Shown: positions 49,299 through 52,349 of the stretch, in pieces
Position numbering within the stretch: position 1 is the first letter of the stretch
How the letters are laid out: every line of letters starts with the position of its first letter
Assembly: GCA_025786725.1 (NCBI GenBank)
Contig: JAHLTZ010000001.1
Span: 124,001-188,000, forward strand
Direction: 5' to 3'
DNA: 64,000 bases
DNA from: Syncephalis fuscata S228
Taxonomy: Eukaryota; Fungi; Zoopagomycota
Translations under genes and position numbers: made by a program
The notes under the pieces: generated by a model
The model's input: only the letters and a program-made list of their open reading frames with translations
What the model was told of the DNA's origin: nothing
The model's database searches: none

Positions 49299-52200
49299 TT
49301 ATTATTGCTACAGCTCTGCTTTTAGAGATGGTAGCCTAGATGACCAAACAACACACTATCCTCACGGTATTCTTTGATATTTGCCAATTTATTTTAATGC
49401 TTAGAATACAACGTGTTGATTGTTTAATGTTGATTTGATAATATGTTTATTACTCATTGTTCATTAATTATCACAGCTCAGCTATAATAAACTCAATAAT
49501 TTGTGTAACATCAAGTAGAAATAGGATCGAGCTGGAAATTATTAATGTATTTATTGCTATCAAATAAAGTTAGCACTATATACTAGACATAGCCAATAGT
49601 AGAGCTTGAATAATTATTAGTGTTTTCTTATCAACGCAGCGTTATTAGTGTATGTTATCAATTATATGTTCACAGCTGATAAATATTTACCAGCTATATT
49701 TTGTAGTAGTTGTCGTTAATAGCTAGTGCAAATATTCAATATATATATATATTGTTTTTGCGACTATTCATATGTAATGTTAACAGATTTGTCTAATTAT
49801 ATGGTAAGTTTTTCTAGCTACGTGATTATAATAGTATGTGCATAATATCGAGATTGTAATGATACAACCATTGGAAAATGCAAAATTTATGCTTTTAATA
49901 GTTATTATTTTAGAAAAACATTTACTTACAATACTTTGAAATGCCAATAAAGCGCTATTTTATATTAAAATTAAAATTATTGCGCCAATTCTATAAAATG
50001 TACAACGTATTGAAAGCGTAATTCTAGTATAAATAAATGGCAAAATTCAATGGCGTTTAAATAAGAACAATAACTTGATTAATAAAATGCTGCTAAATTA
50101 TGCATAACTTTACGTAAAACAAAACAAACTGTATGATGTTTGTATATATACGTACATAACATATATGTAGCTATTAACAAATTATACCGTAATTGCATTG
50201 TGTTATGATGTAATAATTGTACGAATATGTTAATAAATGTGTAAAAATAGCCGTTTTATGCTGTTTATGACCTATATAATTAAAATGCAGCAAAATGATT
50301 GCCGGATTCGAGTTCTCCATGCTTAGTTAAACAGATTGTGTATTTATAGAACAATGATTTTGCACAAATGTTAGTCAAAATGCGATTTACGTATTTTTAA
50401 TTCACTTAGTAAAGCATTGACAAATAGTATAATTGCATATAATAAGCAATTGTCTGATATTTGACAAGCATGCATATGACATATAGATGGTTACTGACAA
50501 GTATACCGTAGTTGCATTGTGTTATGATGTAATAATTGTACGAATATGTTAATAAATGTGTAAAAATAGCCGTTTTATGCTGTTTATGACCTATATAATT
50601 AAAATGCAGCAAAATGATTGCCGGATTCGAGTTCTCCATGCTTGGTTAAACAGATTGGTATAATGTATAGAGTAACAATTTTTGCAAAAAAAATTGGTCA
50701 AAAGTGTAACTTATGTATCTGTTAATTAGAATTACGTTATACGTATACATATAGTATAACTTGATTCTGTGCACCGTTATCGCAACATAATGACTTGCTA
50801 TAATGTTTATTTTAGCACTATACAATGCTTTGGATTTTCTTTAAATTGAATTTCATTTTTATCCTTAAATTTCTAAACTCGTGGAATTTACATACTTTCT
50901 TGTTAACTAATAACACCCAAGTTGCATTTTTGACCAATTTTTTTTGCAAAAATTGTTACTCTATACATTATACCAATCTGTTTAACCAAGCATGGAGAAC
51001 TCGAATCCGGCAATCATTTTGCTGCATTTTAATTATATAGGTCATAAACAGCATAAAACGGCGATTTTTACACATTTATTAACATATTCGTACAATTATT
51101 ACATCATAACACAATGCAACTACGGTATACTTTGTCAGTAACCATCTATATGTCATATGCATGCTTGTGCAAAATATCAGACAATTTGCTTTATTATATG
51201 CAAAGTTATACGTAATTTTGTCAATGCTTTACTAAGTGAATTAAAAATACGTAAATCGCATTTTTGACTAACATTTTGTGCAAAAATCATTGTTCTATAA
51301 ATCACACCAATCTGTTTAACTAAGCATGGAGAACTCGAATCCGGCAATCATTTTGCTGCATTTTAATTATATAGGTCATAAACAGCATAAAACGGCTATT
51401 TTTACACATTTATTAACATATTCGTACAATTATTACATCATAACACAATGCAATTACGGTATAATTTGTTAATAGCTACATATATGTTATGTACGTATAT
51501 ATACAAACATCATACAGTTTGTTTTGTTTTACGTAAAGTTATGCATAATTTAGCAGCATTTTATTAATCAAGTTATTGTTCTTATTTAAACGCCATTGAA
51601 TTTTGCCATTTATTTATACTAGAATTACGCTTTCAATACGTTGTACATTTTATAGAATTGGCGCAATAATTTTAATTTTAATATAAAATAGCGCTTTATT
51701 GGCATTTCAAAGTATTGTAAGTAAATGTTTTTCTAAAATAATAACTATTAAAAGCATAAATTTTGCATTTTCCAATGGTTGTATCATTACAATCTCGATA
51801 TTATGCACATACTATTATAATCACGTAGCTAGAAAAACTTACCATATAATTAGACAAATCTGTTAACATTACATATGAATAGTCGCAAAAACAATATATA
51901 TATATATTGAATATTTGCACTAGCTATTAACGACAACTACTACAAAAATATAGCTGGTAAATATTTATCAGCTGTGAACATATAATTGATAACATACACT
52001 AATAACGCTGCGTTGATAAGAAAACACTAATAATTATTCAAGCTCTACTATTGGCTATGTCTAGTATATAGTGCTAACTTTATTTGATAGCAATAAATAC
52101 ATTAATAATTTCCAGCTCGATCCTATTTCTACTTGATGTTACACAAATTATTGAGTTTATTATAGCTGAGCTGTGGTAATTAATGAACAATGAGTAATAA

Positions 52201-52349
52201 ACATATTATCAAATCAACATTAAACAATCAACACGTTGTATTCTAAGCATTAAAATAAACGTTGGCAAATATCAAAGAATACCGTGAGGATGTGTGTTGT
52301 TTGGTCATCTAGGCTACCATCTCTAAAAGCAGAGCTGTAACAATAATAA
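49299..52349. mobile_element. 3.05-kb non-coding palindrome, foldback-like: ~1.41-kb near-identical inverted arms, ~0.2-kb spacer, internal ~320-bp tandem units
   Basis: 49299-50703 is the reverse complement of 50928-52349 (ends acagctctgcttttagagatggtagcctagatgacc / ggtcatctaggctaccatctctaaaagcagagctgt). A ~155-bp core occurs twice per arm (50185 and 50504). No credible ORF. Confidence 0.8.

Follow-up and report, generated by a model that had tools for sequence, protein, structure and literature searches.

A 3-kb palindrome of Syncephalis fuscata and its dispersed, foldback-like repeat family

Among the systems closest to the locus described here, the foldback transposon Tetris has arms of up to 1,735 bp, 220-bp repeats and TSDs of 8-10 bp (PMC4079207). 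In the centromeres of Komagataella phaffii, the orientation of the middle is polymorphic through recombination in the inverted arms (PMC5010909), and the arms of mammalian X/Y palindromes are described as evolving in concert by gene conversion (PMC8600007, PMC8981503).

The locus that we compare with these systems lies in a stretch of 64,000 nucleotides of Syncephalis fuscata S228 (contig JAHLTZ010000001.1, positions 124,001 to 188,000), hereafter the window, from whose first letter its positions are counted. The host assembly has 371 contigs that total 29.36 Mb, and its introns, of the GT-AG type, are short; L-numbers denote sampled family loci and C-numbers contigs, all from this one assembly. 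An earlier note on the window had proposed a non-autonomous foldback family, a centromere-like locus or a source of hairpin RNA. We consider it probable that the palindrome is one copy of an old non-coding, foldback-like repeat, a likely non-autonomous mobile relic that is now shaped by homologous recombination.

The palindrome and its junctions

The 3-kb palindrome is real, and the near-perfect inverted repeat of the earlier note stands. Its arms, of 1414 bp on the left and 1431 bp on the right, are 98.3% identical; of the columns of their global alignment, 1408 are identical, 5 hold substitutions and 19 are gaps. Perfect inverted matches reach 640 bp, whereas shuffles (n = 30) gave none longer than 16 bp. 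The GC content is about 27%. The lack of coding capacity is also borne out, since the longest stop-free frame in a scan of all six frames has only 79 codons, and searches of the palindrome against Rfam and for tRNAs (ARAGORN) gave zero matches. The spacer between the arms falls within the noted length of about 205-225 bp but is not the unique sequence that it was taken for, having at least 20 relatives in the genome; a hairpin within it was rejected (z = -1.5). Elsewhere in the window, at 39004-41524, there is a separate inverted pair (55 bp, 84%, about 2.4 kb apart) unrelated to the palindrome family.

Table 1. Features of the palindrome and its relatives in the window
Feature	Position	Strand	Remarks
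Left arm, order a-b-R-R	49299..50712	+	arm alignment, module profiles
Module a, left arm	49306..49861	+	about 556 bp; short inverted ends (consensus TGTTAC ... GTAACA)
Module b	49862..50075	+	boundaries approximate
Outer R unit	50076..50405	+	family period 333-334 bp; boundaries approximate
Stretch with 15 missing bases	50337..50498	+	probable consensus errors
Inner R unit	50406..50712	+	about 85% alike to outer R
Central spacer S	50713..50918	.	206 bp; non-palindromic; family-wide, 63% mean identity
Right arm, mirror image R-R-b-a	50919..52349	-	
Module a, right arm	51785..52342	-	
Spliced DUF202 transcript contig	48400..49470	+	3' part, about 170 nt, inside left-arm module a
Second family copy, centre-deleted (R then inverted b)	10913..11521	+	adjoins CAP-domain gene
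Solo module a	13891..14419	-	both short inverted ends; without TSD

Seventeen of the 19 arm gaps are bases absent from the left arm, and 15 of these fall in a single stretch (Table 1) over which the local repeat period of the left arm drops from 334 to 319 (= 334 - 15). Since these bases are present both in the right arm and in three further family copies, and since the period drops, 15 of the 19 gaps are probably consensus errors of the assembly. Such error-like deletions, as well as the fact that the whole element is spanned by no public contig, would be expected if the palindrome were an artefact of assembly or amplification. This reading is so improbable as to be nearly negligible, because an independent run crosses the left junction with left-arm-specific bases, the right junction and the spacer recur on a second contig, and dozens of diverged loci show the same layout.

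The sequence that crosses the left junction is a spliced contig from the independent run X1, probably RNA, which has two GT..AG joints, agrees at 49308 and 49357 with bases specific to the left arm, and has two bases at 49387 that are absent from the assembly. It belongs to the DUF202 gene that the earlier note had placed upstream, whose exon matches PF02656 and whose stop codon lies at 49224-49226, and the DUF202 transcript thus enters module a of the left arm. RNA-type contigs at full identity cover the palindrome only at 49299-49470, as the 3' end of this transcript, so the proposed hairpin-RNA source is unsupported by contigs of this type, which are unable to reveal small RNAs. The second contig, C183, repeats the spacer, the right arm, the right junction and the right flank, with a flank divergence of 0.67%, and behaves as a second haplotype of the window locus; its right arm has a single R unit, compared with two in the window copy.

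A dispersed family of four modules

Clustering of the listed coordinates gives at least 90 family loci on 57 contigs, haplotig duplicates included, and nine contigs bear three to six loci each, spread over hundreds of kb. Genome searches with one arm, one R unit and the outer module a as queries returned 223, 300 and 113 candidates, respectively, and a 24-base R-core motif matched the genome 236 times (control pattern, 0). Homology to about 10 other copies begins at window 49294-49309 and never further out, so the end of the palindrome is the end of the family, and the search of the termini that the earlier note had suggested does find other copies that share them. No relatives beyond the host genome turned up in metagenome or viral contigs, three 20-mer matches outside the genome being attributable to chance.

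These numbers bear on whether the palindrome could be an inverted-repeat centromere like those of K. phaffii or Candida tropicalis. Near-identical kilobase-scale arms, a core of polymorphic orientation as in K. phaffii (PMC5010909), AT-richness and little RNA coverage would all fit such a locus, but we regard it as extremely unlikely: single contigs carry several loci, hundreds of kb apart, the spacer is merely about 200 bp long, and an expressed gene lies 75 bp away and sends its transcript into the arm. The centromere-like locus of the earlier note is therefore disfavoured.

Profiles built from about 25 stretches resolve four mutually unrelated modules, a (about 560 bp), b (about 200 bp), R and S, among which no homology was found. 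The R units have a period of 333-334 bp and number one to four per arm across loci. What is constant in the family is the mirror-image core R-S-R, with S in either orientation at other loci, and the outer parts differ between loci. Full palindromes occur at the window locus and at L031/L032, and other loci have one arm truncated. Module a occurs alone, as direct pairs and as the outer part of the palindrome; in about 10 sampled loci it is direct, not inverted, after the far R units, and in six of these the junction with the direct a runs through about 45 bp of inverted b.

Further arrangements were seen outside these layouts. Near-identical R-S-R cores are locally repeated on contigs C68 (36730-78600), C132, C308, C346 and C2, two of those on C68 having the spacer in opposite orientation. 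At C24:38636-58333, C350:156780-166486 and C157:373718-396088, family modules face inward at distances of 10-22 kb, with an identical core variant in the pair on C24, and these are candidate giant palindromes or cargo-carrying copies; several pairs spaced as widely as this may have a partner gene between them. On C257 (11296-17205), two copies of module a in direct orientation lie 5.4 kb apart, without any match to RT or integrase; on C223 (6195-7094), two copies of it stand in direct tandem.

The neighbourhoods of the loci are varied. Three family loci have a CAP-domain (PF00188) gene no more than about 1 kb away (window 12092-12550 and 47865-48266; L047 5837-6367). Unrelated palindromic repeats occur 1-2 kb from family copies (L041 1524-3105, L038 2240-2943, L044 2640-3408, L047 2330-3254), and inverted repeats of all kinds seem to be abundant in this genome. 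At L045, an ORF for an AID/APOBEC-like deaminase (PF18785; 2801-3391) lies about 130 bp from the family copy. Near four of the 16 loci scanned there are tRNA genes (L033 5764-5845, which abuts a truncated outer module, L038 2073-2145, L043 6295-6370 and L046 7873-7944). About 400 bp from the family copy at L041, an RT match to a DIRS-like retroelement (6006-8058, C314) is of a type also seen on C90 and C312, there 2 kb away from matches to tyrosine recombinase.

Exchange between arms, units and loci

Identity between unrelated loci is 75-79% for R, 67% for a, 65% for b and 63% for S, and with unrelated loci only 63-79% alike the family must be old. Identity between mirror partners inside one locus is mostly 93-100%, and in a tree of 94 R units such partners usually fall into one group; the exceptions are L043 and L044, whose arms are only 79-92% alike. 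If the arms of one locus exchange sequence by gene conversion, they would remain near-identical while the loci drift apart. Such conversion should leave concerted sites, at which two contigs differ and the arms of each contig agree. In the homologous pair L031/L032, whose flanks are 0.7% and 2.3% apart, there are 26 concerted and 6 orthologous sites, five of the latter adjoining the spacer, and in the duplicate pair L031/L034 there are 46 and 5; this signature shows arm-to-arm conversion in both pairs. The other three of the five informative pairs (L047/L048, L040/L042 and L035/L037) have no concerted sites, being very close pairs with little power, and none lies in the short inner stretch of 189 bp tested at the window locus, for which we infer conversion from the family. 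The window arms would thus owe their near-identity to continued copying of each other and not to youth, and near-perfect arms are not the sign of recent transposition that they might be taken for. Since conversion between arms resets them, near-identical arms are unusable for dating foldback elements in this genome.

Crossovers between arms would in addition flip the spacer, and unequal exchange between R units would change their number. At L047/L048 and L040/L042 the flanks are collinear and the spacer is reversed; the two L047/L048 spacers have 0 differences once one of them is reverse-complemented, and the inner R units of this pair swap sides in the R tree, which is what a crossover between the arms would produce. 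Homologous contigs disagree in R count at four loci (window/C183, the 11-kb window copy/C71, where the C71 allele has two R units, L033/L018 and L040/L042). Spacer flips and gain or loss of R units are thus shown between assembled haplotypes, but as the haplotype pairs all come from one assembly, both the flips and the R counts could partly be assembly errors.

Several loci also share kilobases of flank at 70-93%, the shared stretch beginning within the element, a pattern that suggests duplication through ectopic recombination and not a new insertion; several loci have been multiplied along with kilobases of their flank. The flank of the 11-kb window copy is 73% alike to that of L047/L048 over 1.1 kb, so at these loci the CAP gene was duplicated along with the element. 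Several duplications of adjacent DNA have their start within family loci, three of them near genes for CAP-family secreted proteins. Taken with the flips and the gain and loss of units, family loci appear to act as recombination-prone sites.

Origin, the R unit and known systems

The first dispersal of the family was probably the work of a transposase or another enzyme, now lost or unrecognised, and the full palindromes and the copies with a direct outer module would be rearranged forms of one ancestor. No TSD was found at the ends of the window palindrome or of four other copies, and the flanking direct repeats that had been read as a decayed TSD do not line up with the ends of the arms. At L035, a match of 8 bp was rejected as a TSD, as it sits inside another repeat. 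Age could have erased such duplications. In all homologous locus pairs seen, within this one strain, the element is present on both contigs. Partner enzymes were sought with profiles for MULE, tyrosine recombinase, RT, integrase and Helitron only. Between the listed pairs of module a there was no match to tyrosine recombinase, RT or integrase, and the Helitron profile PF14214 had no match in the genome, its control likewise giving none. A MULE with a broken transposase frame abuts a truncated module a at L044 (5682-8061; C339, about 307.0-309.4 kb), and a derivative of it lies in L036 (1203-2865); it has TIRs of its own, of about 180-200 bp, and resembles none of the four modules, and it was dismissed as the transposase-bearing partner that the earlier note had sought. 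Because neither a TSD nor an autonomous partner was found, a mobile origin is something that we infer. The foldback family first proposed survives as a dispersed, non-coding and foldback-like repeat with internal tandem repeats at no fewer than 90 loci, but one without a detected TSD or partner transposase and with many copies whose outer module is direct.

If the family were instead a non-autonomous foldback (TIR) transposon that is mobile or was so until recently, its R units could be binding arrays for a transposase encoded elsewhere. An outer domain, tandem repeats and a middle domain are arranged as in Tetris (PMC4079207), the family terminus is fixed, R is the best conserved module and MULE transposases are present in the genome. 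Such a transposon is nevertheless quite unlikely given the missing TSD, the unrelated TIRs of the L044 MULE and the absence of terminal inverted arms from many copies; moreover, near-identical copies share their flanks and are hence haplotigs or segmental duplicates.

Another possible starting point is a non-autonomous LTR retroelement of the TRIM type, with a as the LTR, the hairpin as the interior, solo a as solo LTRs and the full palindrome as a secondary fold-back. As in TRIM/LARD elements (PMC6696364), there are copies with direct terminal modules and TG...CA-type ends, solo copies and a non-coding interior below 4 kb; direct a pairs with TGTTAC/GTAACA-like ends surround b-R-R-S-R'-R' at several loci, with a shared junction, whereas a is inverted at the window locus. 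Unlike in those elements, a TSD of 4-6 bp was not found, no primer site or purine tract was convincing by eye, and no RT or integrase matched between the listed direct a pairs. The two a copies of one element are only 63-69% alike, no closer than copies from different loci, and the tree does not place them as a pair; among L035/L036/L037, the direct a copies share 88-97% identity. We therefore hold a TRIM-like relic to be rather improbable, although as a story of origin it is compatible with the old, recombination-shaped repeat that we favour.

The length of the R unit poses a separate puzzle. R is the best conserved module in both sequence and length, with a period of 332-335 bp in 12 of 13 independent loci despite 20% divergence, and most loci have their cores 357-365 bp apart across the spacer. 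The ratio of indels to substitutions is 0.045 in R, against 0.13 in a and 0.16 in the spacer, a comparison that is sensitive to divergence and alignment. Neutral decay alone does not explain so tight a length; a constraint on it is possible, with conversion between loci as the alternative. No motif in R is significantly conserved (best window p = 0.09). An R built as a dimer of 167 bp was rejected, as no autocorrelation peak marks a 167-bp substructure, and 10-bp periodicity is weak. A coding origin (333 = 111 codons) was set aside since all frames have stops, there is no 3-base periodicity and 334 is common; likewise, a Pol III B-box in the R core departs from the consensus on inspection, and conservation is not significantly higher in the core than elsewhere in R.

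If the inverted 333-bp arrays were a domesticated chromosomal cis-element (a boundary, an origin or a chromatin organiser) under length constraint, then the steady period, the low indel ratio and the regular core-to-core distance would all be accounted for. We think this very unlikely, since neither a conserved motif nor a 167-bp substructure accompanies them, copies are freely truncated and differ between haplotypes, and conversion between loci could also purge indels. A broader version, in which the R arrays are either a length-constrained chromosomal element phased by protein or nucleosomes or sites bound by a mobilising enzyme that has escaped recognition, is unlikely as well; if true, it would mean such R arrays at some 60-90 sites of an early-diverging fungus, with the spacer flipping between haplotypes. 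The mechanisms favoured here are known and ordinary ones acting on a family for which we found no description in the literature on Syncephalis repeats, and the case would gain weight if a function came to light for the fixed 333-bp length of the unit or if a new mobilising enzyme could be tied to the family.

Among known systems, the foldback transposons (Drosophila FB, Galileo, Tetris) share with this family long inverted arms, an outer flanking domain, a non-coding middle, internal tandem repeats of variable number, many rearranged copies without an ORF, and dispersed copies with common termini. The inverted arms reach the ends of the element in the window copy but not in the direct-a copies, the outer module also occurs solo, no transposase is linked, and the TSDs of Tetris have no counterpart here; because of the last point, we call the family foldback-like and do not file it as a foldback member. 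The centromeres of K. phaffii and C. tropicalis resemble it in their near-identical arms and in the polymorphic orientation of the middle, but they occur once per chromosome, whereas the assembled loci here number at least 90, several to a contig, and have tandem subunits around a short spacer. What the family has in common with mammalian X/Y palindromes is the concerted evolution of the arms; those palindromes exceed 10 kb and contain genes, whereas the loci here are of 1-3 kb, gene-less and dispersed.
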